A stretch of DNA of 64,000 nucleotides from Heterodontus francisci (Eukaryota), in contig NW_027141721.1 of assembly GCF_036365525.1 (NCBI RefSeq), positions 372,001 through 436,000 on the forward strand. Direction: 5' to 3'. The notes under the pieces are model-generated. The model saw only the letters and a program-made list of their open reading frames with translations. It searched no databases and was not told where the DNA came from. Positions 3,524 to 61,217 of the stretch are shown here, in pieces (position 1 is the first letter of the stretch; each line of letters starts with the position of its first letter). The translations under genes were made by a program, and so were the position numbers.

Positions 3524-3593
<70 letters not shown>

Positions 3594-3604: not shown

Positions 3605-3616
3605 CTATAGACCCCA

Positions 3617-5315: not shown

Positions 5316-5945
5316 CAATCTCCCAGATCAATCCCAAAAATAATCCTTCATTCTCCAGATGTATCCCAGTAATTTTCCCTCATTGTCTCTATCTCTGTCT
5401 CCCTCTCTGTCTCAGTCTCTTTAACTCTACCTGTCGTTTTTCGTCTCACTCTCCTCTCTCTCTCACTGGATCACTCTCTCTTTCACACACACATACACTC
5501 TCTTTCTCTCTCGAACAAAGTGGGTGTCCTTGTCCTGTTGATGTATATCAAGCTGGATCTACATGATCTCCTGCTCTTTCAGTTTTCTCACTAAATCCTT
5601 CTCAAAGCCATTACCCGGTCCATGGTCCAGGATCCCCCTCTGCTGTCCCTGTGGAGAAGGTAAACACAGTGTCAGTGCATAAAAACCCAGATTACTGTCA
5701 TTGATTCCTGATAGTTACATTCTGAGATCTCGTGACATCTTTATTAATCATTCATTGCACCCTCGGCAGTACCTGTAAATCTAGTGTGTCACTACAATCA
5801 TAACTCAACTCTTTTTATTGTAATAAACACTGTCACTCTGCATAAGCGAACAGTAGGTCGAGGCACCGAACGGTTTTTCCCTCCACAGGTGTATCCTGCT
5901 GCCTTTGGGGTTTTTGTTGAACAGCGCCATCTCTCAGTCACTGTG

Positions 5946-6432
5946 ATGTCTCCAGGCACAGAAATACACGGCCGAGTGATTCTCCCGCAGGCTGGAGGAC
6001 TCCAGGTTGAACTCGGAGTCAGTTGGTCTTTCAGTGGTGAAACTCTCTACCGTCCCCTCTGAGTTCACCCTTTGTGCAGTTAGAGAGGAAAACATCAGCT
6101 GCGGTTCCTTCCTCGGGTGTTGGCTGTACCAGTACATGTAAGGGTTACTGGTACCATCCACGGTGCATTTCAGCTTCACCTGCTCCCCAGGAGATTTGGA
6201 GAGAGCGGCGGGAGCCTGGCGGATAGTCTGTGAGTTCACATCTGGGAAAGAGACAGGGAGAGGAGGAGATCAGTAAACAGGGAACTTCAGTCCAGTGGGG
6301 AGAGAGAAAGAGGGAAAGAAAGAGAGAATGGGAGAAATAAAAACATATCCAAAAGAAATGTTAAGTAGAATTATTGTTCCAATAAAATCCCTTCCGGTGA
6401 AACAGGGTGATCAGAGTCAGTAACAGATACAT
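5946..6432 (-). pseudogene. TRBV: TCR beta V segment, family A (V1); open frame but defective leader donor and 21-bp RSS spacer
   Basis: Leader 6396-6432 (MYLLLTLITLFH) is followed by GGAAG instead of GTAAG. V exon 5946-6241 reads SQTIRQ..C..WY..YFCAWR. RSS: CACAGTG 5939-5945, 21-bp spacer, ACAAAAACC 5909-5917. Confidence 0.85.
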
Positions 6433-8083: not shown

Positions 8084-8152
<69 letters not shown>

Positions 8153-8519
8153 GATCTGTCTTTATCTGATCTTCACTTCACATTTTAAAATCTTTAATAA
8201 TCTCTCTAAGACCGCTGAAAGTTCACCCTTCAGTCTTCTCCTTTCTGGAACAAAGATTCCCGAAGTTCAAATTCTCTTGATAACTTTAACCTCTCTCCTC
8301 TGATATCATTCCTGTAAAGTCTATTTCACAATTCCCCTGTGTTTCTAAATCTAACCTGTCACTTTCTATTTAAATCCGCCCTGTCGTCTTGTGAAAAACA
8401 TGTTCCCAATGATAAAAACACCCAACAAGACGCAGCACTGCCTGGTTTTATCTGAAACAGGTGTTTCCTGCTGCCTTTGGGGTTTTTGTTGAACAGCTCC
8501 ATCTCTCTGAGTCACTGTG

Positions 8520-8971
8520 AAGACTCCAGGCACAGAAATACATGGCCGAGTGATTCTCCCACAGGCTGGAGGCCTCCAGGTTGAACTGGGAGCTAGTCGG
8601 TCTCTCGGCGCTGAAACCGTCCACTGTCCCCTCTGGATCCACATAGTTAGCAGTTCTGGAGTAAAACATCAACAGCGGCTCCTTCCCTGGCTCTTGTCTG
8701 TACCAGTACATTTCGATGCTACTGCTGCTCCCCTCCACAGTGCACCTCAGTTCCACTCCTTTCCCGGCTAATCTGGAGACAGCAGCGGGAGTCTGGTGGA
8801 TAGTCTGTGAGTTCACATCTGGGAGAGAGATGGAGAGAGGAGGAGATCAGTAAACAGGGAACATCTGGTAATGAAAGGAAGACAGGGAGAGGAGAGGAAG
8901 GTTCTGAGGGATAATCTTTGTATCTGGCACTCACGTTGACCCAGGATTATCAGAGCCAGGAACAGATACAT
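8520..8971 (-). CDS. TRBV: TCR beta V segment, family A (V2), apparently functional
   Basis: Leader 8935-8971 (MYLFLALIILGQ, GTGAG donor). V exon 8520-8818 follows a CAG acceptor with conserved C, W and YFC. RSS: CACAGTG 8513-8519, 23 bp, ACAAAAACC 8481-8489. Confidence 0.93.
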
Positions 8972-10308: not shown

Positions 10309-10365
10309 TCCCATTCATCCGCTGCAGGTTTTTGCAGCTGCGGATCCGCTTTTTCAAACACTGTG

Positions 10366-11263
10366 CGAGACTACAAGCGCAGAAATAGACAGCGGTGTGA
10401 GATGGATTGGCGTCTCTCAGTGCCAAAGTAAACAGTGTATTGCTGGCTCGGACTGCCTTAAATGACTCGGACGTGTAATTGGTAACAGACCCTTCTGTAG
10501 CTGAATAGAACAGAACTTCCAGTGCCCTGTCTGGTTGTTGTCTGCACCAGTACATATGGGAATAGCCAGTATTGATCAGCGTGCATCTGAATGTTGTCGA
10601 CTCTCCTGCTGCAATCGATAGGATAGAGGGCGACTGTTCCACATAGGAGGAGAGTATTCCTGTGGAATGGAACATCGATTAGATTATTATTTCAGTCAAT
10701 AATGGATTGGAGCAGGAGCTGCATTGCAAGAAATAAAGGGCTTACATTAATATAGCGCCGTTCAGGTCCTCAGGACATCAGAAAGGGCATGCAACCAATG
10801 TAGGTACTCCCTCAGTACTGCCTCTGCGACAATGCAGCACTCCCTCAGTACTGCTTCGTCGACAGTGCAGCACTTCCTCAATAGTGCCTCTGCGACAGTG
10901 CAGCACTCCCTCAGTACTGCCTCTGCGACAGTGCAGCAATCCCTCAGCGCTGCCTCTGTGACACGCAGCACTCCCTCAGTACTGCCTCTGCCACAGTGCT
11001 GCACTCTCTCAGTCCTGCCTCAGCGACAATGCAGCACTCCCTCAGGACTACCTCTGCGATAGTGCAGCACTCCCTCGGTCCTGACACCTGGGGTATTAGT
11101 TTTGACTTTGACCTCAAGTGTTCTGGAGTTAGACTCTGACACAGGAGTGTTCCGGACAGAATCACCGCTGACATTACAATACATTATTCTGCACAGTTTC
11201 TGACTTTGACTTACGTGGGAAGAGTGCAGCCATCAAGATTAGATAGAGAACTTCATGCAACAT
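10366..11263 (-). CDS. TRBV: TCR beta V segment, family B (V3), apparently functional
   Basis: Leader 11215-11263 (MLHEVLYLILMAALFP, GTAAG). V exon 10366-10659 reads YVEQSP..FRC..YWCRQ..VYFCAC. RSS: CACAGTG 10359-10365, 23 bp, GCAAAAACC 10327-10335. Confidence 0.9.
10805..11076. repeat. 33-bp minisatellite in the V3 intron
   Basis: (CAGTACTGCCTCTGCGACAGTGCAGCACTCCCT)n, about 8 copies. Also present at 61660-61932 and 63970-64000. Confidence 0.9.
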
Positions 11264-13580
11264 GATTTCTTCATTCGATACTAACTCGATGTGTGAACGT
11301 GTGGCGTTTTCAGCAACACACTTGCAGGCGGTTTCTATATTATATCCAATTAAATACCCAGCATCCGGTTGTTATTGAGATTGGCAGTCACTTACTGCGA
11401 CACTCTGCTCCACCCCATTACTTTACATAGCAATGTTGTAGAATGATACAACACAGGAGGATAGGGGGAGATTGAATAGAGGTGTTCACATTTCAGAAAG
11501 CGCTTTGATAGAGTAGAATTCAGGGAAACAACCCTCTAATCCCAGAGAGTGTGTACATCCCTTATTGCCCCTGAGAAGGTGGCGGTGAACCATCTTCAGG
11601 AATACCTGCTGGGCCATATCAGGGGGCAATTAATAGTCAACCGCATTGTTGTGGGTCTGCAGTCACATATAGGCCAGACCGGGTTGGAACAGCAGATTTC
11701 CTTCCCTGAATGTCATCAGTGAATACGTTGCGTATTTATGACACTCCATGTTCAGAATTACTCATACTTTCCATGATAATTTTTTGATTTATTTAATGAA
11801 TTAAATTTAAATTCCATTTCTGCCCCTGGTGAGAATTGAACTCATGTCTGGGGATCATTAGTCCATGCCTCTGGATTACTAGTCCAGTAACATAACTGCT
11901 CTGCTACCATACCTCCTTGCTGAATGGGAGTTAAAGGGTTAAATTGTTCACTGGTCTGAATTGCTAGGTTCTTTGAAGAACACATCAAATGTGACTGGAG
12001 TCTGAGATCAAAGTGGGTAAACAGTTTTCAGCAGCTTTTGAACTCGCTGTCAGGAGTCAGGGGTCCCAGAGATGAAGGTATCTGGAGAGGGGTCTCGCCT
12101 TTGAACAGTGTGGAACAGCACTCAGGTGGTTAAGGGTTTTGAACTGAGTTAGTTCCTGGGCATTGGGGGGTTGTTCGGCTCTGTGTAGTGAAGGTTAGAG
12201 GGAGATTAACCAGACTGGTACCAGGGATGAGGGACTTCAGTTACTGTGGAGAGACTGGAGAAGTTGGGGGTTTCTCTCCTCAGAGCAGAGAAGGTTAATG
12301 GTAGATGTGATACAGATATTGAAGATCATAGAGGATTTTGATAGATAAATGATGACAAACCACATCATCTCCTGGTCAATGTATAGAAACTCTATGAAAA
12401 GATGGTCATTTATTACATTACTGCAGCATGTTTAATTAGTTCATACAAACTGTATTCACCTAAAGATAGAGTTAGATAGATAGAGATACAGAGAGAGAGA
12501 TAACCAGTTCGAGAGATAGATAGATAGAGAGACAGAGAGATAGATAACCAGTTAGAGAGATAGATAGAGAGACTGTCAGCTAGACAGGTAGATATAAAGT
12601 GAGGTAGAGAAATAGAGAGATAGAGGCAAAGTCATATAGGTAGAGAAATAGCGAGCTCGATAGACAGACAGTCATTGCCCCTGTAAAAGACAGGGATGCT
12701 AATTGGTATTCTGTCATTTTACACTGGCTTGGTAGCTCGAGTGAGAGAGAGGAATGGAGAGAGAGGGATGGAGAGATATGGAGATGGAGGGATGGAGAAA
12801 GATGGATGGAGGGAGAGGGAAAGAGAGATGGTGGGAGAGAGAGAGGGATGGAGAGAGAGAGAGATGGGGAGAGAGGGATGGAGAGAGTGGGAGAGAGAGG
12901 GATGGAGAGAGAGCGACGGAAAGTTATTGATCAGTCATGATCTCATTGAAGGGCGTAATGTTTTCGTGGTGATGAATGGTCTCCTTTTGTTCCCAGGTCA
13001 CTGTCAAAGTGTGTCCCAGACTCTGATGTTTATCATGGTCCTACAGCGCACTCTGCTGTCCCTTTGGAGAAAGAAAACACAGTGACATAAAACCACACCG
13101 TTTGTATGCCTGTATTGTATGGATCTATCTATCTCGCTATCTATCTCTCTTTATTTATCTACCTATCTAGCTATCTGTCTATCTATCTGTTTGTCTGTCT
13201 GTCTATCTATCTATCTGTTTTTATCTGATCTTCATTTCACATATTAAAATCTTTAATAATCTCTCTAAGACCGCTGAAGGTTTACCCTTCAGTCTTCTCC
13301 TTTCTGGAGTAAAGATCCCCCGATGTTCTATCTATCTTGATAACTTTAACCTCTATGTTCCGATATAATTCCTGTAAAGTCTATTTCATAATTCCCCTGG
13401 GTTTCTATATCTAACCTGTCACTTTCTTTTTAAATCCGCCCTGTCATCTTGCGAAAAACATGTTCCCAATTATAAAAAACACCCAACAGGATGCAGCACC
13501 ACCTGGTTTTATCTGAAACAGGTGTTTCCTGCTGCCTTTGGGGATTTTGTTGAACTGCTCCATCTCTCTGAGTCACTGTG

Positions 13581-14028
13581 AAGACACCAGGCACAGAAAT
13601 ACACGGCCGAGTGATTCTCCCGCAGGCTGGAGGACTCCAGGTTGAACTGGGAGCTAGTCGGTCTCTCAGCGGTGAAACCGTCCACCGTCCCCTCTGGATC
13701 CACATAGTTAGCAGTATTGGAGTAAAACATCAACAGCGGCTCCTTCCCCGGCTCTTGTCTGTACCAGTACATTTCGATGCTACTGCTGCTCCCCTCCACA
13801 GTGCACCTCAGTTCCACTCCTTTCCCAGGAAATCTGGAGACAGCGGCGGGAGTCTGGTGGATAGTCTGTGAGTTCACATCTGGGAGAGAGAAGGAGAGAG
13901 GAGGAGATCAGTAAACAGGGAACTTCTGGGAATGAAAGGAAGACAGGGAGAGGAGAGGAAAGTTATTCACGAGTATTTCATTCTCACTTACAATGAAACA
14001 GGATTATCAGACCTAGTAACTGATACAT
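13581..14028 (-). CDS. TRBV: TCR beta V segment, family A (V4), apparently functional
   Basis: Leader 13992-14028 (MYQLLGLIILFH, GTAAG). V exon 13581-13879. RSS: CACAGTG 13574-13580, 23 bp, ACAAAATCC 13542-13550. Confidence 0.92.
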
Positions 14029-14250: not shown

Positions 14251-14710
14251 TTACGTTCCGCTCTCTCCCTTTCTCTCCGACTCACTCTCTCTCTCTCTCT
14301 CCCAATCTCTTACTTTTACTATCTCTTTAGTTCTTTCTCTGTCACTGTCTTTCTCTCTATCTCTGTCTCCCTATCTGTCTCAGGCTTTTTTAAAATCTCT
14401 GTCTCTCTTTCCCTCCTTCTCTCTCTCGCTGTCCACTCTCTCTCTCTCTCATTATGTCTCTCTCACTGTCTCGCTGTCTTTGGCTCTATCTGTGTCTCCC
14501 TGACTCGTGACATCCCGATTAATCGTTCTTTGCACCCTCGCCAGTATCTGTAAATTCAATTTGTCACTACAATCATAACTCAATTCTTTTTATTATAATA
14601 AACACTATCACTCTGCACAAGTGAGGCACAGAACAATTTTATCCTCCACAGGTGTTTCCTGCTGCCTTTGGTGTTTTTGTTGAACTGCTTCATCTCTCTG
14701 AGTCACTGTG

Positions 14711-15193
14711 AATACTCCAGGCACAGAAATACACGGCCGAGTGATTCTCCCGCAGGCTGGAGGACTCCAGGTAGAACTCGGAGCCAGTTGGTCTTTCGGC
14801 GGTGAAACCCTCCACCGTCCCCTCTGAGTTCACGTTTTGTACAGTTAGTGAGTAAAACATCAGCTGCGGCTTCTTCCCTGGGTATTGTCTGTACCAGTAC
14901 ATGTAAGGGTTACTGGTGCCATCCACGGTGCATTTCAGCTTCACCTGCTCCCCAGAAAATTTGGAGACAGCGGCGGGAGTCTGGCGGATAGTCTGTGAGT
15001 TCACATCTGGGAAAGAGACAGGGAGAGGAGGAGATCAGTAAACAGGGAACTTCAGTCCAGTGGGGAGAGAGAAAGGGAGAAAGAAAGAGAGATGTAAATA
15101 AAAACATAACATAAAGAAATGTTAAATAGAATTATTGTTTCAATAAAATCCCTTACAGTGAAACAGGGTGAGCAGAGTCAGTAATAGATACAT
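14711..15193 (-). CDS. TRBV: TCR beta V segment, family A (V5), apparently functional
   Basis: Leader 15157-15193 (MYLLLTLLTLFH, GTAAG). V exon 14711-15006 reads CTVDGTSNPYMYWYRQ..YFCAWS. RSS: CACAGTG 14704-14710, 23 bp, ACAAAAACA 14672-14680. Confidence 0.93.
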
Positions 15194-20975: not shown

Positions 20976-20993
20976 TCACTGATGCCTGAAAAC
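20976..20993 (-). pseudogene. TRBC: TRBC-like exon 4 (cytoplasmic tail VFRHQ*)
   Basis: Acceptor CCTCTCCAG, then GTT TTC AGG CAT CAG TGA. Phase 0, matching the end of the TM exon. Confidence 0.7.
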
Positions 20994-21072
20994 CTGGAGA
21001 GGATTGAAGTTTACAGAATAGAGAAGGGGGTCCGTTTTACACGTCAGCAAAATGTCCTAGTAATTCTCATAC

Positions 21073-21182
21073 CTTCCCCTTGAGCAGCACGATGGTGATC
21101 TTTGCCATATACAGGAAGCTCTTGGAGATGAGTAAAGTGTAAGTAGCTCTTGCCACAATCTGTTGCCTCTGTATCCGCTCCA
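21073..21182 (-). pseudogene. TRBC: TRBC-like exon 3 (connecting peptide/TM), open frame
   Basis: TTTCAG acceptor; (V)ERIQRQQIVARATYTLLISKSFLYMAKITIVLLKGK; GTATGA donor. Contains the TCR-beta TM motif Y.LL..K..LY with the CD3-pairing lysine. Confidence 0.88.
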
Positions 21183-21347
21183 CTGAAAGACAGACAAGAA
21201 AGACCATAGTCACTGGCCCTAAAATCCAACTTAATCATTATGTACATTCCATAAGTGTGTGTGTATGTGCATGAGAGAGCGAGAGTGTGAGAGAGAGAGA
21301 GACAAAGACAGATCATAGCAAACTGATAAAATATTGAACGTTCTCAC

Positions 21348-21365
21348 CATTCCCTTCACAGAGGC
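21348..21365 (-). pseudogene. TRBC: TRBC-like exon 2 (18-nt hinge with interchain Cys, GLCEGN)
   Basis: TTTCTTGCAG acceptor, 18 nt, GTGAG donor. Same size and phase as the TRBC hinge exon. Confidence 0.82.
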
Positions 21366-23333
21366 CTGCAAGAAATCAAAAAGAGGAAAAAACTTCAATT
21401 ATTTGTGCATAAATCACAGTTTTCATATCACAGCAAGAACATAAATCGGGGGAAAATTCTCTGCACAGAGATTGGNNNNNNNNNNNNNNNNNNNNNNNNN
21501 NNNNNNNNNNNNNNNNNNNNNNNNNNNNNNNNNNNNNNNNNNNNNNNNNNNNNNNNNNNNNNNNNNNNNNNNNNNNNNNNNNNNNNNNNNNNNNNNNNNN
21601 NNNNNNNNNNNNNNNNNNNNNNNNNNNNNNNNNNNNNNNNNNNNNNNNNNNNNNNNNNNNNNNNNNNNNNNNNNNNTCTGTATTTGTTTCCATGTCTCTC
21701 TGCGTGTCACACTCTATCTCCGTCACTCTCTCTGACTCTATTTCTCTTCCTTTCTCTCTCTCTCTGTCTCTCTCTCTCTCTGTCTGTGTGTGTCTCTTTC
21801 TCTGTCTCTGTCTTGCTCTCTTTCTCTCTGTCAGTGTCTCTCTTTCTCTCTGTCTCCGTCTCTGTCTCTCTCTATTTTTCTCCTTTTCTCTCTGTCTCTG
21901 TCTTTCTGTCTGTCTGTCTCTCTCTCTCACTCTCTCGCTATTTCTGTCCTTTTCTCTCTGTCTCTGTTTCTCTATCTCTCTGTGGATCTCTCTGTCTCTC
22001 TCTCTCTCTCTCTCACTGTCTCTGTCTTTCCCACTGTCTCCCTGCCTTTCTCTCTCTATGTCTCTCTCTTTCCTTTCCTCTCTCTCTCTCTCTCTCTTTC
22101 TGTGTCTCTCTCTCAGTCTCTCTCTCTTTGACCATGTGTCTCTCTCTGTACGTGTCTCTCTCTCTGTCTCTGTCTCTCTCTTTCGCTCCATTTCTCTCTG
22201 TCTTTGTCTCTGTCCCTGTTTCTGTCTCTCTGTTTCTGTCTTTCTCTGCCTCTCTCTCTCACTCACTGTCTCTGTCTTTCCCGTTGTCTCTCTGCCTCTC
22301 TTTCTCTTCCTGTCTCTGTCTCTCTCTCTGGCTCTGGCTCTCCTTCTCTCCTTGTCTCTCTGTCTCTCNNNNNNNNNNNNNNNNNNNNNNNNNNNNNNNN
22401 NNNNNNNNNNNNNNNNNNNNNNNNNNNNNNNNNNNNNNNNNNNNNNNNNNNNNNNNNNNNNNNNNNNNNNNNNNNNNNNNNNNNNNNNNNNNNNNNNNNN
22501 NNNNNNNNNNNNNNNNNNNNNNNNNNNNNNNNNNNNNNNNNNNNNNNNNNNNNCTGTTTCTGTTTCTCTGTCCCTGTCACTCTCTGTCTGTCTCTCTCAA
22601 TCTCTGTCTTCTCCCAGTCTCCCTCTCTCTCTCTCTTTGTGTCTCTCTGCCTCCCTCTGTCTCTGTCTTTCTCTCTTTCTCTCTGTATGTGTATCTCTCA
22701 CTGTCTCTGTCTGTCTTTCTCTGTCTGTCTGACTCTATCTCTCTCGTTCTCCTTTTCTCTCTGTTTTTGTTTCCATGTCTCTCTGTGTGTCACGCTCTAT
22801 CTCCGTCGCTCTCTCTGNNNNNNNNNNNNNNNNNNNNNNNNNNNNNNNNNNNNNNNNNNNNNNNNNNNNNNNNNNNNNNNNNNNNNNNNNNNNNNNNNNN
22901 NNNNNNNNNNNNNNNNNNNNNNNNNNNNNNNNNNNNNNNNNNNNNNNNNNNNNNNNNNNNNNNNNNNNNNNNNNNNNNNNNNNNNNNNNNNNNNNNNNNN
23001 NNNNNNNNNNNNNNNNNNNNNNNNNNNNNNNNNNNNNNNNNNNNNNNNNNNNNNNNGTCTCTCTCGTTCTCTTTNNNNNNNNNNNNNNNNNNNNNNNNNN
23101 NNNNNNNNNNNNNNNNNNNNNNNNNNNNNNNNNNNNNNNNNNNNNNNNNNNNNNNNNNNNNNNNNNNNNNNNNNNNNNNNNNNNNNNNNNNNNNNNNNNN
23201 NNNNNNNCCCTGTCTGTTTGTCTCTGTGTCACTCTCTGTCTCTATCTCCCTGTCTGTCTCTCTCCCTTTCTCTTTCTGTGTGTCTCTTTCTCTATTTCTC
23301 TCTCTCTCCTTCTCTCTCTCTCTCTTTCTCGGT

Positions 23334-23365
<32 letters not shown>

Positions 23366-23754
23366 ATCTTTTTCCCTCACTCTCTGTCTCTGAGTGGTGA
23401 ACCATTTGGGTGAACATCAGGTTATTGATGGTTACTGAGCCGAGGCGTCAAATAGAGTAATTGTCGCGATTAATCTTTATGCAACAGAATGGTGGAACAA
23501 GCTTCAACGGCTGAATCGCCTCGGCCTCTTCCAGTGTTCTTAAGTCTCACCTATGATGTAGACTTTCCCAAGCTATCCACCTAACTGAATTCCTTCATCC
23601 CTGGAACCTTTGTCGTGAATATTTTGTGCACCCTCTCGAACACCTTCACATCCTCCCTCTAGGCTGTAACATTGTATTGATAAAGGTTCAGTATAGCTTC
23701 CTTGCTTTGGGCTCGGGAGAAGCAGAGGTGATTCCAGGCATTGCAAACACTCAC

Positions 23755-24091
23755 CTGCCTTGCTGCTGATCTTGGCATCTTGAGAAATCTCCGCGCCGTC
23801 TTTACTGTAATGGGTCACTTTGCAGGAATACTGCTTGCGGGCCCATTCGGCCATGGGAACCTACAACCTACTGGTCCACGCTGTAGCGGCCAGCATCATC
23901 CTTTACCCACCTGTCAGTCAGCACATCCTTCGTCTCGATCTCCTCGTTGCCCCCCTGTCCAGGAGAACTTCACGTAGTCCGGGAAGAAGCCACTGGCCAG
24001 GCAGACAAAGGTGGCTTTCTTAGGGCCCTGATTTCTTCGTCCGATGGCTCAAAAACGGTCATGGTGGGATGCTTAACCTCTTGGTCTGCCT
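23755..24091 (-). pseudogene. TRBC: TRBC-like exon 1 (C1 Ig domain) with three frameshifts and one stop
   Basis: Reconstructed as EADQEVKHPTMTVFEPSDEEIRAL/KATFVCLASGFFPDYVKFSWT/GNEEIETKDVLTDRWVKDDAGRYSV/TSRL*VPMAEWARKQYSCKVTHYSKDGAEISQDAKISSKA, then a GTGAG donor. Matches the C-beta hallmarks VFEPS.EI, KATLVCLA.GF.PD and SRL.V. Confidence 0.9.
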
Positions 24092-24334
24092 CTCTGGGAG
24101 AGCGAAACATGAGTGTTAGGAACGATGGGGATGGAAGGGGGGTTGGCGAGTGGGGGTGGGGGGGGGGAGTGTGCTTACCCCAGCGTTCATTCTCCTTCAC
24201 CACAACATCAACAGTTTGTTGTAGACTCTATAAAAGAAAGGAGGGAGGGAAAAAACAGAGATATACAGACCAGTTAGCCTGACATCAGTAGTGGGTAAAA
24301 TGATAGAGACTATTAGAAAGGATGTGATAACGGA

Positions 24335-25330
24335 ACAGAGATAGGGAGCAGGGGGCTGGAGGACGTTACAGAGATAGGGAGGGTTGTTGGGGCTGGAGGA
24401 GGTTACAGAGATAAAGAGGGTTGGAGGGGCTGGAGGGGTTTCAGATATAGGGAGGGGTGTGGGGGCTGCATGAGGTTACAGAGATAGGGAGGGTTGTAGA
24501 GGCTGAAGGAGGTTACAGAGATAGGGAGGGGTGTAGGGTCTGGAGGAGGTAACAGAGATAGGGAGGGCTGTAGGTGCTGGAGGATGTTACAGAGATAGGC
24601 AGGGCTGTGGGTGCCGAACAATGTTACAGACATCAGGAGGGGTGTAGGGGCTGAAGGAGGTTACAGAGCTAGGGAGGGGTGTAGGGCCTGGAGAATGTTA
24701 CAGAGATAGGAAGGGGTGTCGGGGGCTGGAGGAAGTTACAGACATAGGTAGCGGTGTGGGGGGCTGGAGGATGTGACAGAGATAGGGAGGGGTGTAGGGG
24801 GCTGGAAGGGTTTACAAAGATAGGGATGGTTGTGTGTGCTGAAGGAGGTAACAGAGATATGGAGGGCTATAGGGTCTGGAGTATGTTACAGAGATAGGGA
24901 GGGCGGTAGTGGCTGGAGGATGTTACAGAGATAGAGAGGGGTGTAGGAGCTGGAGGAGGTAACTGAGATAGGGAGGGCTATCGGGTCTGGAGGATGTTAC
25001 AGAGATAGGGAGGGCTGTAGGGACTGGAAGATGTTACAGAGATGGGGAGGGGTATAGGAGCTGAAGGAGGTTACAGAGATAGGGAGTGGTGTAGGGGTTG
25101 AAGGATGTTACAGAGATAGGGAGGGTGTAGGGGCTGGAGGATGTTGCAGAGACAGGGATGGATGTGGGGTGCTGATGGATGTTACAGAGATAGGGAGGGT
25201 GCAGTGGCTGGAGGATGTTACAGAAATAGGGAGGGGTATATGAGCTGTCGGAGGTCACAGTGTTAGGCAGGGCTGTCGGGGCTGGAGGATGTTACAGAGA
25301 TAGGGAGGGTGGTAGGGGCTGGAGGAGGTT
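24335..25330. repeat. Minisatellite of about 33-35 bp in the J-C intron
   Basis: (GGAGGATGTTACAGAGATAGGGAGGGGTGTAGGGGCT)n. Confidence 0.9.
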
Positions 25331-26609
25331 GCCCGAGTCCCAGTCCAGAGCTGCAAGTCTATCATCCAGGGCAACACTACCTCCAGGACTGAGAGAAAAG
25401 CAGACTTAGAACCGGAGCTTGTAGGAAAGCGAGGGAGAGGTCGATGATCGAACAGAAACAAGGTAACAAGTAGAGAGGGGGCAAGCAGAGACAAACAACA
25501 GGGAAAAGGAAGAGGGTATGTAGAGAGAGAGTAAAGGATAAGAAATAAAGAGGATGAGGAACTTAGTGGCGGAAAGCTTTAACGAAAGAGAAATAAAGTG
25601 AGTTCACACAAGATGACACAAAGGATGAGAGACTTCAGTTAATGTGGAGAGACTGGAGGAGCTGGGATTGTTCTCCTGAAGAGAAAGTTCAGGGGAGATT
25701 TAGCAGAGACGTTTGCAATCGGTCATGGTTTTGACAGAGTAAATGAGGCGAAACTGTTTCCCGTGACACAAAGCAGTGAGCTGTTGTGATGTGGAATGCA
25801 TTGCCTGAAAGGGCAGTGGGATTCACTCATAGTATTACAAAGAGAATTGGGTCAACAGCTGAAGGGAAGGAATTACAGGTCGATAGCGATAGGGTGGGAA
25901 GGAACTGGGATCAATCAGACAGCTGTAGAAAGAAGCCAACCCTGGCACCATGGTCAATGGTCCAGAATTGTACTGCTCTCTCTGCCCGAATCTCTCTCTC
26001 TCTCTCCCTCTACCTGAATCTCTCTCTCCTTTCCTCTCTCAATCTCAGTAAATCTCTCCCTCTCTGATTCCTTCCCTCTCTCCCTGAATCTCTCCCTCTC
26101 TCTCTGAATCGCTCCCACTCTCTCTCTCTGAATCTCTCCCCCTCTCTCTCTCTTGGGTTCTCTCCCTCTCTCCCTGAATCTCTCCCTCTCTCTCTGAATC
26201 TCTCCCCCTCTCTCTCTTGGGTTCTCTCCCTCTCTCCCTGAATCTCTCCCTCTCTCTCTGAATTGCTCTCTCTCTCTCTAAATCTCTCTCTCTCTGAAAC
26301 ACACACCCCCGATCTGAATCGACCCCACTCTCTCTCCCTCTGCCTCTCTCTCTCTGAATTGCTCTCTCTCTGTCTCTAAATCTCTCTCTCTCTCTGAAAC
26401 ACACCCCCTCCCTCTGAATCGCTACCACTCTCTCTCTCTCTCTCTGCCTCTCTCTCTGAATCTCTCCCTCTCTCTCTAAATCACTCTCTCTCTCTCTGAA
26501 ACTATCTCTCTCTCTGTCTCTCATTCCCCCTCGGAGTGTTTCTCTCTCAATTTGTGATTCTCTCCCTGTGTTTCTCTCACTGGCTTTCTGTCTGCCTCTC
26601 TACTGCCTG

Positions 26610-26685
<76 letters not shown>

Positions 26686-27069
26686 CTGTTTATTTTTTCT
26701 CTCCGTTTCTTTCTCTCTCTCTCTTCCCTCTCTCTTTCTCTCTGTTTCTTTCCATCGATCTCTATCATCACTCTCTCGGTGTTTCTTTCCCTCTCTCTCT
26801 GTTTCTTTCCCTCGCTTTCTGCATCTTTCTCTCTCTTCTTCCATTTTTTCTCGCCATTTTTTCTATCTCACATTTTTCTCTGCTTATTTCCCTTTCTGTT
26901 TATTTCCCCCTCTCTGCACCAAAGAGGCACAATGATCAAATGGCCTCTTCCAACACAATAATAAGATTCCATCTGCTCAGACACGGTAAACTCAGAGATA
27001 TTATGGTGTGTACCGGCTCCTTTTGCTCCCCAACTCAACCTCCAGCACCGGGACTCGAGCATTACGTAC

Positions 27070-27118
27070 CCAGAACGGCGAGTCGGGTCCTCCCTCCGAA
27101 GGTAGATGGATCGTTCAC
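27070..27118 (-). other. TRBJ: TCR beta J segment (FGGR variant)
   Basis: VNDPSTFGGRTRLAVL + G, then a GTACGT donor. 12-RSS: heptamer CACAGAG 27119-27125, 12 bp, nonamer ATTGAAACC 27138-27146. Confidence 0.8.
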
Positions 27119-27386
27119 CACAGAGAGTGAACCCACCATTGAAACCCCCCTCCCCCAGCAAGCCTCTCGCCTTGCCTGGGCAGTTTGCTGTCTCTTCAGG
27201 GGGCATGTGCCCCATGAGATGGTCAACTCAGGATTCAGTCTGCTCCTGCCTGTCCTGACAGTGCAGGCGCATGCTGCAGGGGTGGGGAGATCCTGGGCAC
27301 TGGGGCAGGCAGTCGGGTAGACTGTGAGAAGGGCAAGCAGACGGTGGAGTTCCTGCACGGGGTGAGCACAGGAATGTAACACGGTG

Positions 27387-27400
27387 CTATACTGACCTCC
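27387..27400 (-). other. TRBD: TCR beta D segment (GGAGGTCAGTATAG) with 12/23 RSS
   Basis: 5' RSS: TTTTATTGA, 12 bp ending TGTAA, CATCGTG (27401-27428). 3' RSS: CACCGTG 27380-27386, 23 bp, GCAGGAACT 27348-27356. Confidence 0.75.
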
Positions 27401-29138
27401 CACGATGTTACAAAGCAGTTCAATAAAACCTCTCCCCCCCCCCTCTCTCTCTCTCTCTCATTTTCTGTCCGTTTATCTCTCACTTCAAATTTCCCTTTTA
27501 ATCACGTGTCCTTCCCTTTTCCGAGTTATTATCCCATTGGAGGTCTCCTGTTTCCATAAACACTTTCTCTCCTCCATATTGTAATCTTCTTCTCCCTGTA
27601 TAAGTCTCTTGACAAGTCTTTCTCTCTCTGTGACTCCATTCCTGTCTCTGTCTGTCTTTCTCTCACTCTCTATCTCTCCCCGTCCCTCTGAAACCCTNNN
27701 NNNNNNNNNNNNNNNNNNNNNNNNNNNNNNNNNNNNNNNNNNNNNNNNNNNNNNNNNNNNNNNNNNNNNNNNNNNNNNNNNNNNNNNNNNNNNNNNNNNN
27801 NNNNNNNNNNNNNNNNNNNNNNNNNNNNNNNNNNNNNNNNNNNNNNNNNNNNNNNNNNNNNNNNNNNNNNNNNNNNNNNNCTTTGTCTTGATCTCTGTTT
27901 TGCTTCTCTCTCTCTATCTTTGCCTGTCTCTGATGTTCTTCCTTTTCTCTCTCAGCATCACATCTCTCACTGTCTCTCGTTCTCTGCCTCTCTTTGTCTC
28001 TTTCTGTCTCTCCCAGTCTCTCCATCTCTGTCTCGCTATTTCACTCTATCTCTCTTTCTGTGTCTAAAACTATCACACTATATCTCTGTCTATCTGTCTC
28101 TGACTGTCTGTCTGTCTGTCTCTCTCTGTTTGGCTGTCTTTCTGTCTCTCCCTCTGTCTCTCTGTTTGCCTGTCTCTCTCTCTCTCTCTGTCCCTGTCTC
28201 TCCCTCTGCTTCTTTCTCTTGTTCTCTGTTTACCTTTACTCTTTCTCTCCCTTTCTCTCTCTCTATCTTTGCCTGTCTCTGACGTTCTTCTTTCTTCTCT
28301 CTGCCTCTCACTCTCTCACTGTCTCTGTCTGCCTCTCTCTCTGTCTCTCTCTTTCGCTCTATCTCTCCATCTGTCTCACTACCTCACTCCGTCTCTCTTT
28401 CTCGGCCTCACGCTATTTCACGCGATCTCTGTCTGCTGTCTCTCTCGGTCTCTCTCGCTGACTCTCTCTGCCTCTTTGTCTTGTTCTCTGTATCCTTCCT
28501 CCCTTTACTCTTTCTCTCCCTTTCTCTCTGTCTATCTTTGCCTGTCTCTGACGTTCTTTTTCCCCCTCTCTTCCTCTTTGACTCTCACTGTCTCTGTCTG
28601 CCCCTCTCCCTGCCTCTCTCTCTCTCCGNNNNNNNNNNNNNNNNNNNNNNNNNNNNNNNNNNNNNNNNNNNNNNNNNNNNNNNNNNNNNNNNNNNNNNNN
28701 NNNNNNNNNNNNNNNNNNNNNNNNNNNNNNNNNNNNNNNNNNNNNNNNNNNNNNNNNNNNNNNNNNNNNNNNNNNNNNNNNNTCACTCTCTCTCTGCCTC
28801 TCTCTATCTCTTTCTCTCTGTCTCTCTCTCTCGCTCGCTCTCTGTCTGCCTCTCACTCTTTGCCACTCTCTCTCTCTCTGCCCCATCTCTCTTTCTGACT
28901 CTCTGTCTTGTTGTTTTCCTCCTTCCCTTTACTCTTTCTCTCCCTTTCTCTCTCTCTATCTCTGACGTTCTTCCTTCTCCTCTCTGCCTCTCACTCTTTC
29001 ACTGTCTCTGTCTGCCTCGCTCTCTGTTTCTTTCTTTCTCTCTGTCTCTCCATCTGTCGCACTACCTCAACTGTTTCCCTTGCTGTGCCTGACACAATCT
29101 CACTCTATCTCTGTCTACTGTCTCTCTCTGTCTATCTG

Positions 29139-29180
<42 letters not shown>

Positions 29181-30117: not shown

Positions 30118-30720
30118 CTCTCGCATTCACTCCATCTCTGTCTCTCTGCCTCACTCTGTCTCTCTTTTTCAAACGCTATATTCCTCGAACTCCGTCTATC
30201 TGTCTCTCTCTCTGTCTCTGTGGGTCTCTGTCTCTGTGTTTCTCTCTATATATGTCACTTTCTCTGCCTTTCTCTCTCTCAGTCTCTCTCTCTCTGTCTC
30301 TCTCTCCCTTTCTCAGTCTCTCGCAGTCACTCCATCTGTGTCTCTCTGCCTCACTCTGTCTCTGTCTTTCAAACGCTATATTACTCGATCTCCATCTATC
30401 TGTCTCTCTCTCTGTCTCTGTGGGTCTTTGTCTCTATGTTCCTCACTCTATGTATCTCTTTCTCTGCCTTTCTCTCTCTCTCTTGCCTCTCTATCTCTCC
30501 CTGTCTCCCTCTATCTCTCTATCTGTCCCTCCCCTCCCCACCCTATCACAGACTGTCTCTTTTGCATTTCTTCACGCTCAAACATCCATTTAAGTTGCTC
30601 AAAACGCTTCTCATGTTTGCCGGTTCTGATGTGAAGCGGTAGCTCTGTTTTACTCTCTGCAGATCCTGCCTGATGCACTGAGGATTTCTAACATTTCATG
30701 TTCTTGTTGCTGAAATCCCA

Positions 30721-31118
30721 TCTACTGCTGCCGCCTGTTGGTGGGCAATGACAGCTGCACCTCCATCTACTGCTGCTCCCTGTTGGTGGGCAATGACAGC
30801 TGCACCTCCCTCTACTGCTGCTCCCTGTTGGTGGGCACTGAGAGCTGCACGTCCATCGACTGCTGCCCCCTTTTTGGTGGGCAGAGAGCTGCACCTCCGT
30901 CTACTGCTGCCCTCTGTTGGTAGACAAAGAGAGCTGCACCTCCAGCTACTGCTACCCCCTTTTGGTGGGCAATGCGAGCTGAACCTCCATCTACTGCTGC
31001 CCCCTGTTGGTGGGCAATGAGAGCTGCACCTCCATCTACTGCTTCCCCCTGTTGGTTGGCAATGAGAGCTGCACCTCCAGCAACTGCTCCCCCTAATTGC
31101 GGGAAACGGGTACTGCGA
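30721..31118 (-). promoter_or_regulatory. Second array of about nine 45-bp units with CTCF core plus upstream motif
   Basis: Minus-strand unit TGCAGCTCT-CATTGC-CCACCAACAGGGGGCAGCAGTAGATGGAGG. Lies between the upstream V genes and the D segment. Confidence 0.7.
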
Positions 31119-34115: not shown

Positions 34116-34466
34116 CAAAGAGAGTTGTGTGTTTGATCATCTGAGTGAAAGAAGACACCGTGTTAGTGGATAAAACCCCAATCTTTTTCCTGATATTCTC
34201 TCCTGATAGTTAAAACCTCAGTGTGGTGCCACCCTTCTTAATCTTTCATAGAAAGATAGAAAACTTATCAGCACAGAAAGAGGCCAGACTCTTCGCCTCT
34301 GCACCTGTGCTCTCAATTTTATTCTCACCCGTCTATTCTTACTGTCAAAAATATGATGGCCCTGCATCAATTCAAGTGGAAATACCGCGCTATTGTATGT
34401 CCAACAGGTGTTTCCTGCTGCCTTTGGGGTTTTTGTTGACCTGCTCCAGCTCTCTGAGTCACTGTG

Positions 34467-34921
34467 AAGACTCCAGGCACAGAAATACACGGCCGAGTGA
34501 TTCTCCCGCAGGCTGGAGGACTCCAGGTTGAACTGGGTGCTAGTCGGTCTCTCGGCAGTGAAACCGTCCACCGCCTTCTCTGGACTTTTGTGATTAGTAC
34601 CCGTGGAGTAAAACATAACCTGAGGCTCCTTCCCCGGGTATTGTCTGTACCAGATCAAGGGAAGAGTACTGCTCCCCTCCACAGTGCACTTCAGTTCCAC
34701 TTCCTCCCCCACAACTCTGGAGACAGCGGCAGGAGTCTGGAGGATAGTCTGCGAGTTCACACCTGGGAGAGTGTGGGGAAGAGGAAGAGTTCAGTAAACA
34801 GGGGATTTCTAGGAAATTAAAAGGAAGGGGGAATGAGTAAAGGAAGGTTATGAGAGAAAATGTTGGTATTTCAGACTCACTCACAGTGAAAAAGGATTAT
34901 CAGAGCCAATGACTGATACAT
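34467..34921 (-). CDS. TRBV: TCR beta V segment, family A (V6), apparently functional
   Basis: Leader 34885-34921 (MYQSLALIILFH, GTGAG). V exon 34467-34762. RSS: CACAGTG 34460-34466, 23 bp, ACAAAAACC 34428-34436. Confidence 0.92.
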
Positions 34922-39348: not shown

Positions 39349-39405
<57 letters not shown>

Positions 39406-39440
39406 GGATAGATAGATAGATAGATGGATAGATAGATAGA

Positions 39441-40943: not shown

Positions 40944-42879
40944 NNNNNNNNNNNNNNNNNNNNNNNNNNNNNNNNNNNNNNNNNNNNNNNNNNNNNNNNN
41001 NNNNNNNNNNNNNNNNNNNNNNNNNNNNNNNNNNNNNNNNNNNNNNNNNNNNNNNNNNNNNNNNNNNNNNNNNNNNNNNNNNNNNNNNNNNNNNNNNNNN
41101 NNNNNNNNNNNNNNNNNNNNNNNTCCACTCACTGACACCACTCACTGCCACCACTCGCTGACACCACTCACTGTCCTCTTTCACTGACTCCACTCACTGA
41201 CCCCGCTTACTGACCCCACTCACTGACTCCTCTCACTGACCCCAAACACTGACACCACTCACTAACTCCTCTCTTTGACCCCACTCACTGACACCACTCA
41301 CTGACCCCACTCACTGACTCCACTCACTGTCCCCACTCACTGACCCCACTCACTGACCCCACTCACTAACTTCTCTCTTTGACCCCACTCACTGACACCA
41401 CTCACTGACCCCACTCACTGACTCCACTCACTGTCCCCACTCACCGACCCCACTCCCTGATACCACTCATCGACACCACTCGCTGGCTCCTCTCACTGAC
41501 CCCACGCACTGACCCCACTCACTGACTCCACACACTGACTCCACTTACTGTCCACACTCACTGACCACACTCACTGACCCCACTTACTGACCCCACTCAC
41601 TGACTCCACTAAGTGACTCCACTGAGTGACTCCACTCACTGACTCCAGTCACTGACAACACGCACTGACCCCGCTCACTAACCCCGCTTACTAACCCCGC
41701 TCACCGACTCCACTTACTGTCCCCGCTCACTGACTCCACTCACTGACTCCACTGAGTGACTCCACTGACTGACTCCACTCACTGACTCCAGTCACTGACC
41801 ACACACAGTGATCCCGCTCACTAACCCCGCTTCGTAACCCCGCTCACTGACTCCACTTACTGTCCCCGCTCACTGACTCCACTCATACACCTCACTCACT
41901 GACTTCACTCACCTACTCCACTGAGTGACACCACTCAGTGACTCCTCTCACTGACTCCATTCACTGACCCCACGCACTGACCCCGCTCACTAACCCCACT
42001 CACTGCCTACACTCACTGCCTACACTCACTGCCTCCACTCACTGCCTCCGCTCACTGTCCCCGCTCACTAACCCCACTCACTGACCTCACTCACTGACCT
42101 CACTCACTGACCTCACTCACTGACTCCACTGAGTGAAAGCACTCAGTGACTCCACTCACTGACTACACTTACTGACCCCACTCACTGATCCCACTCACTG
42201 ATCCCACTCACTGATCCCACTCATTGACTCCACTCACAGACCCCACTCAATCTCCCAGATCAATCCCAAAAAGAATCCTTCATTCTCCAGATGTATCCCA
42301 GTAATTTTCCCTCATTGTCTCTATCTCTGTCTCCCTCTCTGTCTCAGTCTCTTTAACTCTACCTGTCGTTTTTCCTCTCATTCTCCTCTCTCTCTCATTA
42401 GATCACTCTCTCTTTCACACACACATACACTCTCTTTCTCTCTCTAAAGTAGTGGGTGTCCTTGTCCTGTTGATGTATATTAAGCTGGATCGACATGATC
42501 TCCTGCTCTCTTAGTTTTCTCACTAAATCCTTCTCAAAGCCATTGTCTGGTCCATGGTCCTGGATCCCCCTCTGCTGTCCCTGTGGAGAAGGTAAACACA
42601 GGGTCAGTGCATAAATACCCAGATTATTGTCATTGATTCCTGATGGTTACATTCTGAGATCTCGTGACATCTTTATTAATCGTTCATTGCACCCTTGGCA
42701 GTACCTGTAAATCTAGTGTGTCACTACAATCATAACTCAACTCTTTTTATTGTAACAAACACTTTCACTCTGCATAAGGAAACAACAGGTAGAGGCACCA
42801 AAAGGTTTTACCCTCCACAGGTGTTTCCTGCTGCCTTTAGGGTTTTTGTTGAACTGCTCCATCTCTCTGAGTCACTGTA

Positions 42880-43364
42880 TTCTCTCCAGGCACAGAAATA
42901 CACGGCCGAGTGATTCTCCTGCAGGCTGGAGGACTCCAGGTTGAACTCAGAGTCAGTCGGTCTCTCGGCGGTGAAACCCTCCACCGTCCCCTCTGAGTTC
43001 ACCCTTTGTGCAGTTAGGGAGTAAAACATCAGCTGTGGCTCCTTCCCCGGGTATTGTCTGTACCAGTACATGTAAGGGTTACTGGTGCCATCCACGGTGC
43101 ATTTCAGCTTCACCTGCTCCTCAGAAAATTTGGAGACAGAGGCGGGAGTCTGGTGGATAGTCTGAGAGGTCACATCTGGGAAAGAGACAGGGAGAGGAGG
43201 AGATCAATAAACAGGGAAATTCAGTCCAGTGGGGAGAGAGAAAGAGAGAGAAGGAGAGAACGAAATAAATAAAACCATATCCTAAAGAAATGTTAAGTAG
43301 AATTATTGTTTCAATAAAATTCCCTACGGTGAAACAGGGTGATCAGAGTCAGTAACAGATACAT
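42880..43364 (-). pseudogene. TRBV: TCR beta V segment, family A (V7); open frame, RSS heptamer TACAGTG
   Basis: Leader 43328-43364 (GTAGG donor). V exon 42880-43175. Heptamer 42873-42879 has lost the invariant first C; 23-bp spacer; nonamer 42841-42849. Confidence 0.85.
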
Positions 43365-45091
43365 CTTTTACTTTAAGCTGCCTTCTGAATCTGCAAAGGG
43401 GAGAGAGCAGGAATGATGAGTGTTGTCAATAACCAACCCACTCTTTACAAATCATTGGGAGGAACAGGGAGAGCATTAGGAAGTGATGCAGAGATGGTGA
43501 CGTTCATTTCCCACATCAACAAATGAGAATCGAGTTGGTTGCCAATGTCCCACTTTCTCTCTCTCCCTCTGTCTCTCCCTGTCCTTTACTTGAGATGCTC
43601 CTTTCTTCCTCTCTGTCTCTCTTCTGTGCCTCCCTATATGTCTCAGTCTGTTTATTTCAGTCTCTCTCTCACAGATACACACACATTAGGTCTCTCTCTC
43701 TCTCTTTGTTTGTCTCTCTGTAATGATGTTTTATCAATCTAGTTTGATAGAAGTTAGTAGTGGATGAAAACACAGCAAGTATTTAGCAGAGGTATCTTTA
43801 TGAACGATGAATACCTACATGGAAGAAGAGAACAGACGATTAGGAAGAGTTTGACTAACTGCATCCTGCAGACTGGTGGCTGAAACTGTTCATGAATCAA
43901 TATCAGGCGGCTGAAGATAAAGCAGAGAGCGGAAATGACAGCACTGGAAGCAGGGTTTCCTTCTGACCCCTCACTTCTGGGTATGACAGAATAATAACAC
44001 CCCCTGGTCGGAAGGAGCTTGAATAAGGAACTGCTTCCCGTCTGTGTCTGGCTCTCGTTGCTTGTGTCTGATTAGTGTTGTGTCGGGTAGCTCTTTCGAA
44101 CAGCTGGGCCAGGCTCGATGGGCTGAATGGCCTCGGCTCTGCTGCATGATTCTATAAATATATAAGACGCATCAAGTTGCTTGTTTGTATTAGGCAGATA
44201 AAGATTTATTTTCCCTGTGCTAAACGACAATTCAAGGGCTGTGTTTTACATTGGGGTGAAATCTTAGATACTTTGAAAAGCGACAGTGTCATGAAGAAGT
44301 GGGTTAACTGTTTTGAACAGATGCTCAAACCGCTGTCAGGAGGCAGGTGTTCCAGTGAGAGACCTATCTGGGGAGGTGTCTCACTTTTGCATTGTGTGAG
44401 TCATTGGGGACATGTACAAGAGGGAGCTATGTGTAACTCTTGTCAAAAACCACAGACAGCTCATTCAACAGGACCATGAACCCATTTACCCCACCTCGGA
44501 ATCTGTTCTTTCCAGGTAGAGGCTGTCTTAACGAGAAGGATCTGAGCACATTGCTGCAGCATTTTTAATAATTCATAATGTATTGATGTACTCTGAGTCG
44601 AAGGAGAGCAAGAAGATGAAACTGAAAGAGACAGAGATGACAAATATATATATATATGATCGAGATAAATAGATAGATAAATGGTGCAAATAACCAAAAA
44701 TGGACAGTGAGATCGATAAATAGATCGATACAGATGGAGAGATAGATAGATACAGATGGATAGATAGATACAGATAGATAGATAGAGACAGAGAGACAGA
44801 CAGACAGACAGGCAAACACAAAGATAGATAGATACAGATAGATTTTTTGATAGATTGATAGACACGTAGATGGATAGAAAAATAGATAGACATGGATAGA
44901 TACAGATCGATAGACAGATTGACAGACAGACAGATAGATAGATGCAGAGACGCACAAAGAGACACAGAAACTCGCAGGTAGTCCGAGAGACAGAAAGACA
45001 CTGAGGTAGACAGGCAGGTTTATCTCCCACAAGTGCTTTCCTCCCCCTTTAGAGTTTTTGCTGTACTCCGGCGCCTTTCTGAGTCACTGTG

Positions 45092-45985
45092 CTGTCTCCA
45101 GGCACAGTAATACACGGCTGATTGATTCGCCCACAGGCTGGAGGACTCCAGGTAAAAATGGGTGTTGTCGGGTCTCCTGGCGGTGAAACCGTCCACCTCA
45201 CCGGAGGGAATGACCGTTCCGGGGACGTTGGAATAGAAAAGGTTCTCGGGCTCACGGTCCAGATGCCACCGGTACCAGTAGAAATAGGAGCCAACTACTG
45301 CTTCAGGGTAAATACACTGGATACTGACTGGAGAACCTGGGGAATGGGATAGGGAAGCGGGAGTCTGTTGTATCAGCACCGCCCCCACATCTGTAAAACA
45401 GAGAGAGAGAGAAAGATAAACCCAGAGACAATGTTTAAATTGACATCGGCCACAAAGAGGGGAGAGGCACGATGGGCTGAAAGACCTCCTGTGTGTTCTC
45501 GATGTCCCGTTTTCCTTTGTAAGAAGGGAGAGGTGGGAGACGGGGAGCTGCACAGAGAGAGAGAGAGAGAGAATGAAAAAGAGTGAGAGAAAAGGAGAGA
45601 AGCAGAGACAGAGAGAGAGCGGGGGAAGCAAACACACTGAGGGAGAAAAACAGCAACAATTTAAGCATGGGCAACAGACATGAAGGAACTAAGAGGACAG
45701 GGAGAGAGAGCAAGAGAGACAGAAAGAAAAGGAGAGTGGGAAGGACAGACATAGAGGTACATATATCGTTAGACAGAGAGAAAGAGAGAGGGGGAGAGAG
45801 AAAGGAATTCAAAACGAGAAAGAGAGCAGCTAAATTAACAATCACAGTGACGGTGCCTAGTAGGGGGGTAAACCCCCAATGGGGTCACACAGGGAAAGAG
45901 CAGTGAGGATGACTGACAGCTCCCAGTCCAGTTCCACCTTACCCCTTAACACCAGTAACACAACCCAGAGGTGAGACACAGTCAT
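45092..45985 (-). CDS. TRBV: TCR beta V segment, family C (V8), apparently functional
   Basis: Leader 45943-45985 (MTVSHLWVVLLVLR, GTAAG). V exon 45092-45390 reads LIQQTP..IQC..YWYRW..VYYCAWR. RSS: CACAGTG 45085-45091, 23 bp, GCAAAAACT 45053-45061. Confidence 0.92.
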
Positions 45986-51200: not shown

Positions 51201-51817
51201 CTGACTCCATGCACAGTAATACACGGCTGATTGATTCACCCACAGGCTGGAGACTCAAGGTAAAAATGGGTGTTGTTGGGTCTCCTGGCGGTGAAACCGT
51301 CCACCTCACCGGAGGGGGTGACCGTTCCGGCGGGGTAGGAATAGAAAAGGTTCTCGGGCTCACGGTCCAGATGCCATCGGTACCAGTAGAAAACAGAGCT
51401 AGCTGTTGCTTCAGTGTAAATACACTCGATCCTGACTAGAGTGCCTGGGGAATGGGATATGGAAGTGGGAGTCTGTTGGATCAACACGGCCACCACATCT
51501 GTAAAACAGAGAGGGAGAGAGAGAGAGAAAGAGAGAGATAAAACCAGGGACAATGTCTATATCGTTATCAACAAGAAGAGGTAGAAGTGGGCAGACAGAG
51601 AGAGAGAGAGAGCGGTGGGGACCAGTTAGAAATAGAGACAGAGATAAAGGCAGAGATAGAGAGAGAGAATGAGAGACAGAGAAAGAAATATAAAGGGAGA
51701 AGGAGAGAGACAGAGACTGAGAAGCAGAGACACATGTACATCATTGGAACCTCACAGTTCAGACACCTCCTTACCCGTTAACACCAACAACACAACCCAG
51801 AGCTGAGACAAAGACAT
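51201..51817 (-). pseudogene. TRBV: TCR beta V segment, family C (V9); 1-bp deletion in FR3
   Basis: Leader 51775-51817. V exon 51201-51498. GGCTGGAGACTC versus GGCTGGAGGACTC in paralogues shifts the frame before YYC. RSS intact (51162-51200). Confidence 0.88.
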
Positions 51818-61160: not shown

Positions 61161-61217
61161 TCCCGTTCATCCGCTGCAGGTTTTTGCAGCTGCAGATCTG
61201 CTTTCTCAAACACTGTG

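Follow-up and report, generated by a model that had tools for sequence, protein, structure and literature searches.

A stretch of 64,000 nucleotides from the shark Heterodontus francisci (assembly GCF_036365525.1, contig NW_027141721.1, positions 372,001 to 436,000 of the forward strand; hereafter, the window) carries variable (V) gene segments of an antigen receptor locus and, between them, one diversity (D), one joining (J) and one constant (C) gene. We read this D-J-C cassette as a decayed T cell receptor (TCR) beta pseudogene unit, left over from block duplication and stranded among co-oriented, partly functional V segments (probability about 0.7). The cassette is not a working recombination or expression unit, as its C gene is a pseudogene and the motif of its J is lost. 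All genes in the window lie on the minus strand, in the order V..V-D-J-C-V..V and in a single orientation.

Anatomy and identity of the cassette

The elements of the cassette are as follows, from D to C (positions are those of the window).

27401..27428, minus strand: 5' signal of D; heptamer (reverse complement CACGATG), 12-bp spacer, weak nonamer
27387..27400, minus strand: D-like coding element of 14 nt, between inward-facing CAC heptamers with 12- and 23-bp spacers
27348..27386, minus strand: 3' signal of D; heptamer CACCGTG, 23-bp spacer, weak nonamer (5/9)
27119..27146, minus strand: J recombination signal; nonamer GGTTTCAAT, 12-bp spacer, heptamer CTCTGTG
27070..27118, minus strand: J segment; reads ..STFGGRTRLAVL, phase-1 end, then a GTACGT donor
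23755..24091, minus strand: C exon 1, immunoglobulin (Ig) domain, pseudo-exon; from three-frame translation, tblastn and DNA contigs
21348..21365, minus strand: C exon 2, 18 nt; encodes GLCEGN, which contains the inter-chain Cys; good AG/GT borders, 6/6 identical to catshark P0003
21073..21182, minus strand: C exon 3, open; connecting peptide and transmembrane part with the conserved Lys, 58-61% identical to P0008 and P0003
20976..20993, minus strand: C exon 4; VFRHQ, then stop; poly-A signals at 20723 and 20711

An earlier note, made from the letters of the window, had proposed a D with 12- and 23-bp-spacer recombination signal sequences (RSSs), a J with a 12-RSS and a splice donor, and four C exons with matching splice phases. 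The first two hold in part. The CAC-flanked D-like element is unique on both strands of the window, with 0.01 expected per window from shuffles, but its nonamers are poor: with a 12-bp spacer the 5' nonamer matches at 5/9 positions, and 7/9 is reached only with a spacer of 14 bp. Judged by its sequence, the element appears weak but clearly not a product of chance. The J likewise keeps its RSS (on the plus strand, CACAGAG-12-ATTGAAACC) and its donor, but its motif is FGGR and not FGXG, the second Gly being replaced by Arg. No second J-like segment was found between D and C.

The four C exons were borne out. Searched in single exons and pieces, the gene has AG/GT borders and phase-1 junctions at all four exons; its exon 2 is short and contains a Cys, and its transmembrane exon contains the conserved Lys. 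A phmmer search of 1.8 billion representatives, for which the last exon-1 piece served as query, returned two proteins of cloudy catshark (P0003, P0004) and one of whale shark (P0008). The C region of P0003 is 93% identical to that of small-spotted-catshark P0009, whose NCBI name is 'T cell receptor beta chain-like'. When the catshark and whale-shark C regions were placed onto the window with tblastn, the last exon-1 piece was 63% and 53% identical, and the piece around the B strand 86%. The best single-stretch PDB matches of one exon-1 piece were all TCR beta chains, and in the protein atlas P0008 adjoins the 'T cell receptor beta constant 2' cluster (TRBC2). By this sequence comparison, in which the pieces share 53-86% identity with the C-beta of catshark and whale shark, the cassette C is TCR-beta-like. 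A non-beta identity, a better match to which would have told against the note, was rejected on the name of P0009 and the PDB matches.

Other searches added little. The last exon-1 piece and the transmembrane exon gave nothing useful with phmmer against PDB, and multi-domain Ig heavy chains dominated the PDB matches of the entire P0008. NCBIfam gave no match, nor did Rfam within 15-35 kb. Homologue searches with a V, the catshark C and the whale-shark C returned 1-3 proteins each, none from H. francisci, and tblastn found no second C in the window.

Lesions of the constant gene in DNA and RNA reads

Aligned with tblastn to the C-beta of catshark and whale shark (P0003, P0008), C exon 1 falls into four pieces in frames -3, -2, -3 and -1. 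Compared with intact relatives, it misses one base near 24022 and has an extra base near 23956 and another near 23877, and the last piece holds an in-frame TAG at 23863-23861 (..TSRL*VPMAEW..). With three frame changes and a stop, there is no exon 1 that is open in a single frame and carries both domain cysteines. The C gene and the J motif both tell against a working D-J-C cassette.

This decay would be only apparent if the cassette were a working unit of a tandem V-D-J-C cluster locus and its frame changes were assembly errors, an explanation that draws on the correct order and phase of all parts, the open exons 2, 3 and 4 and the expression of several C-beta-like exon-1 variants in the animal. 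Contigs from four public runs of one sample were aligned to the exon 1 region (23420-24290). Both DNA runs contained contigs with the exact letters of the window over all lesions, at a k-mer depth of ~23 that corresponds to single-copy diploid sequence. The frame changes are therefore present in the reads and are not slips of the consensus, and assembly error was rejected as their cause. The TAG and the FGGR of the J, moreover, are substitutions and not homopolymer slips, and the indel states of the window at 24022, 23956 and 23841 were seen in no RNA contig of the same animal, although rare forms can escape contigs. A working cassette is scarcely credible on this evidence and is already largely refuted.

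The DNA contigs also revealed a second genomic exon-1 type (hereafter, type A; region 23815-24167), 93-94% identical to the window and of similar depth. Its sequence was obtained by applying the differences of the DNA contigs to the letters of the window; these contigs are short and their mutual linkage is unproven. From the beginning of exon 1 as far as ..RYSV, type A keeps a single frame, and it then has the +1 near 23877 in common with the window. It is also dead, with a private W-to-stop change (23908) and a further extra base at 23841. Should the short contigs be linked, type A and the window copy would descend from a last common ancestor that was broken already, and copying of the relic would have followed its death. 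Because the +1 near 23877 is common to both, the cassette was probably dead before it was last copied with V blocks.

Two small runs were RNA-like: they covered exon 1 and not the following intron, and their contigs ended at the acceptor and spliced at the donor. The RNA contigs represented no fewer than three variants of exon 1 with ≥90% identity, and the RNA contig over the type A lesion part had the same states as type A. One of these variants (23978-24092) differed from the window at 2/115 letters and retained the base missing there at 24022; it was matched by no DNA contig of the same sample. One RNA-like contig joined 76 window-identical letters up to 23755 to 24 letters that occur once in the window (21159-21182) and are the first bases of C exon 3. 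This join of exon 1 to exon 3 fits one transcription unit, and a paralog with the same letters could yield the same contig. Since dead, stop-bearing C-beta copies occur in spliced exon 1-exon 3 RNA contigs, dead cassettes of this family are transcribed.

The RNA contigs that were seen splice exon 1 directly to exon 3, omitting the 18-nt exon 2 with the inter-chain Cys despite its good splice sites. Exon 2 is also absent from the whale-shark model P0008 and is included in the catshark models P0003, P0004 and P0009.

Layout, duplication and contiguity of the locus

The window was scanned for recombination signals together with the Tyr-Phe/Tyr-Cys-Ala motif that ends V exons. This gave 13 V segments with RSSs of the 23-bp-spacer type, all of which matched Pfam V-set. 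Eight lie upstream of the cassette (at higher coordinates) and five downstream, so that the counts, coordinates and shared minus-strand orientation given in the earlier note are right. The V exons form three subgroups, two of which are represented on both sides of the cassette.

63489..63636, minus strand: upstream V at 63549, subgroup II; heptamer at 63527; 3' part, good 23-RSS, frame broken further 5'
61179..61542, minus strand: upstream V, subgroup II; heptamer at 61217; exon open, TGA right after Cys-Ala, good 23-RSS
59666..60156, minus strand: upstream V at 59725, subgroup I; heptamer at 59704, defective (CAGACTG); leader, exon open
55735..56397, minus strand: upstream V, subgroup III; heptamer at 55773; leader, exon open, 23-RSS
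51162..51553, minus strand: upstream V at 51221, subgroup III; heptamer at 51200; pseudogene with a frameshift close to the 3' end
45053..45985, minus strand: upstream V, subgroup III; heptamer at 45091; leader, exon open, 23-RSS
42841..43203, minus strand: upstream V at 42900, subgroup I; heptamer at 42879, defective (TACAGTG); exon open
34428..34921, minus strand: last upstream V, at 34487, subgroup I; heptamer at 34466; leader, exon open, perfect 23-RSS
14672..15193, minus strand: first downstream V, subgroup I; heptamer at 14710; leader, exon open, 23-RSS (nonamer 8/9); 94% identical to the V at 42900
13542..14028, minus strand: downstream V, subgroup I; heptamer at 13580; leader, exon open, 23-RSS; 93% identical to the V at 59725
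10327..10678, minus strand: downstream V at 10387, subgroup II; heptamer at 10365; exon open, good 23-RSS, no leader passed the filter; 94% identical to the V at 61239
8481..8971, minus strand: downstream V, subgroup I; heptamer at 8519; leader, exon open, perfect 23-RSS
5909..6269, minus strand: downstream V at 5966, subgroup I; heptamer at 5945; exon open, RSS spacer of 21 bp only

At least three of the downstream segments (ends 14731, 13601 and 8540) combine an ATG leader and phase-1 donor with an open exon and a canonical 23-RSS. In the heptamers at 59698-59704 and 42873-42879 the essential first three bases are mutated and the V exons are open; given these mutations, the V segments at 59725 and 42900 are probably no longer cut.

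The layout of a mammalian-type TRB translocon, in which every co-oriented V lies 5' of each D-J-C cluster, is not what the window holds, as five co-oriented V segments with 23-RSSs lie 3' of C. Because these lie 3' of the D in the same orientation, they cannot be joined to it by deletion; this topological argument, already made in the earlier note, holds. They would then have to serve a D-J-C further downstream. Of two other proposals of the note, a period of tandem V-D-J-C blocks found no support within the window, since a second copy of the cassette with its flanks (~15.5-34.4 kb) is absent from the window, and the likeness to shark Ig clusters fails on distance, the closest upstream V RSS (34466) being 7 kb from the D and the eight upstream V segments extending over more than 35 kb.

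Self-comparison revealed three direct matches between the two sides of the cassette: 1-3604 with 36193-39439 at 92-96% identity, 4187-6570 with 41126-43502 at 85%, and 6959-12566 with 57959-63413 at 81-92%. V pairs on opposite sides are 90-95% identical. The V blocks either side of the cassette are recent direct duplicates of one another, and the homology of 1-6570 with 36193-43502 ends at the edge of the window.

One further element of the region, 3.3 kb upstream of the D, separates it from the last upstream V.

30718..31094, minus strand: 45-bp minisatellite, 8.4 copies (TRF); CTCF-like core in each unit, the motif being read by eye

We propose that a block with V segments, the CTCF-like array and a D-J-C unit was duplicated inside the locus, that the D-J-C of the copied block may then have decayed, and that later duplications of V blocks would have enlarged both flanks. 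The V segments of the two flanks would then act as one array, with deletional rearrangement to a working D-J-C beyond position 1, and joining of an upstream V to that downstream D-J-C would delete the relic cassette. Such a second D-J-C beyond position 1 is a prediction, and the homology that runs to the window edge fits it. If this homology continues, the counterpart of the V at 34487 would be expected ~2 kb, and that of the cassette 9-15 kb, beyond position 1.

How far the order of these elements can be trusted depends on the gaps in the window, four of which divide the C gene.

21476-21676, 22369-22553, 22818-23056 and 23075-23207, no strand: four N stretches, all in intron 1

These sit between the donor of exon 1 (23755) and exon 2 (21365); another three N stretches (27698-29480) separate the D from the last upstream V. 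The intron 1 gaps interrupt neither an exon nor an RSS nor a reading frame, and the DNA beside each of them is CT-rich and of low complexity, alike on either side. The D-J-exon 1 piece (23208-27697), or the entire cassette, could have been misplaced among the V segments by scaffolding. Seven N stretches around and inside the cassette speak for such an artefact, as does the abundance in this locus of duplicates of 81-96% identity, which are prone to misjoins; in pink salmon, forward V segments after TRBC were judged an assembly issue (PMC10464911). On the other hand, positions 1-21475 are gap-free and hold C exons 2-4 together with all five co-oriented downstream V segments, and the order of C and then V segments is therefore independent of any gap. 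Exon 1 also agrees with exons 2-4 in strand and order, RNA joins 23755 to 21182 in letters identical to the window, and every gap lies in the same type of CT-rich repeat on both sides. We therefore hold a scaffolding artefact to be quite improbable.

The relic might still have a function. In principle it could still be cut by RAG, as a sink or decoy for V-to-DJ joining, or it could act with the CTCF-like array as a boundary in the V array, with rescue by a later downstream join. The essential CAC is kept in both D heptamers and in the J heptamer, the CTCF-like minisatellite is close to the D, and stop-bearing C-beta copies are found as spliced RNA. However, the nonamers are poor, the best 5' spacer is 14 bp, and the copy in the window is itself absent from the RNA contigs. 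An active relic thus seems unlikely.

Several points weaken our interpretation of the cassette as a decayed leftover of block duplication. The shared lesion depends on short contigs whose linkage is unproven. The DNA runs are probably from the sample of the assembly itself, and with them consensus errors are excluded whereas a state specific to this individual is not. The link from the cassette to the eight upstream V segments spans the three N stretches at 27698-29480, and the continuity of exon 1 with exons 2-4 across the four gaps of intron 1 is unproven from the window. The required downstream D-J-C is not visible in the window. Lastly, the RNA contig with 2/115 differences points to a near-twin elsewhere that is intact or carries fewer lesions, or to an allele, filtering being a further possibility.

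A broader and more tentative model, to which we give somewhat less than even odds, is that the locus is no single translocon but a chain of large co-oriented V(n)-D-J-C blocks that arose by repeated duplication, with several C-beta copies transcribed and some blocks dead, like the present one. The dead blocks would still be open, transcribed and perhaps cut, and thymocytes might step from block to block as along TRG cassettes or Ig-lambda units.

Known antigen-receptor loci and repeats of the array

The TCR genes of cartilaginous fish are mammal-like translocons according to a review (PMC6795676). Our search of the literature turned up no germline map of TRB from any shark, and no direct-orientation V segments 3' of a C in the published TRB maps searched.

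In tetrapods, the TRB locus holds between two and five D-J-C units in tandem, with no V segments in between (PMC12529555); such TRBD-TRBJ-TRBC clusters number two in human and mouse, three in sheep and five in axolotl (PMC12529555, PMC10464911). The shark cassette resembles these loci in its one D-like element, whose weak signals are placed as a 5' 12-RSS and a 3' 23-RSS, in a J that has a 12-RSS and a donor in phase 1, in a C of four exons, of which the second has 18 nt and the transmembrane one bears Lys, and in the 23-RSSs of the V segments. It differs in that its single unit is dead and has a single J, and in its five co-oriented V segments after C, whereas in tetrapods the co-oriented V segments are all 5' of the clusters and the sole V after the last C is inverted.

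A further parallel in layout is TRG, for which dead cassettes and V segments flanking a constant gene are well known; V-J-C cassettes are found there in ruminants, carnivores, mouse and salmon, with dead examples including mouse TRGC3 and bovine TRGC7 (PMC7349638). As in TRG, V segments lie before and after the constant gene in one orientation, growth is by the copying of whole units, and some units have decayed. However, TRG has no D, few V segments per cassette and several cassettes adjacent to each other, in contrast to the single cassette in 64 kb of the shark TRB. Salmonid TRB loci also have locally duplicated D-J-C units and V segments 3' of a TRBC: chinook salmon has [C-J-D]-[C-J-D-V]-[V-D-J-C], and pink salmon has nine forward V segments after TRB2C (PMC10464911). 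The salmonid units form head-to-head pairs, and the authors ascribe the forward V segments, a single case among salmonids, to a likely assembly problem, whereas the C-to-V stretch of the shark is gap-free. The Ig mini-clusters of cartilaginous fish (V-D-D-J-C within about 10-20 kb; PMC6795676) come from the same animals and share the idea of many repeated units, but each has one tightly linked V that rearranges inside the cluster, unlike the many V segments over tens of kb described here. The layout is new for TRB and follows a known build plan of antigen-receptor loci, and the cassette itself is an ordinary pseudogene.

A D-J-C with potentially functional co-oriented V segments behind it would show that the locus grew by copying entire V-D-J-C blocks. 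TRG and Ig-lambda loci grew likewise, and such copying carries relics of constant genes along. This bears on the relation of cluster and translocon layouts in early jawed vertebrates. For annotation, a naive gene model at the cassette would call a working TRBC, and for repertoire work, RNA holds reads from dead C copies.

Further repeats were noted in and around the array. A related 45-bp repeat with a CTCF-like core occupies 9894-10361 and immediately follows the RSS that belongs to the V at 10387. Another minisatellite lies within the cassette.

24352..25330, no strand: 37-bp minisatellite, 26 copies, 78% match (TRF); fills part of the J-C intron

Within the V array, a LINE (long interspersed nuclear element)-like reverse-transcriptase reading frame of 856 aa is open at 47292-49862 on the plus strand. 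A 5'-cut relative at 39497-41128 on the minus strand abuts an N stretch and is missing from the duplicate block at 3604-4187.

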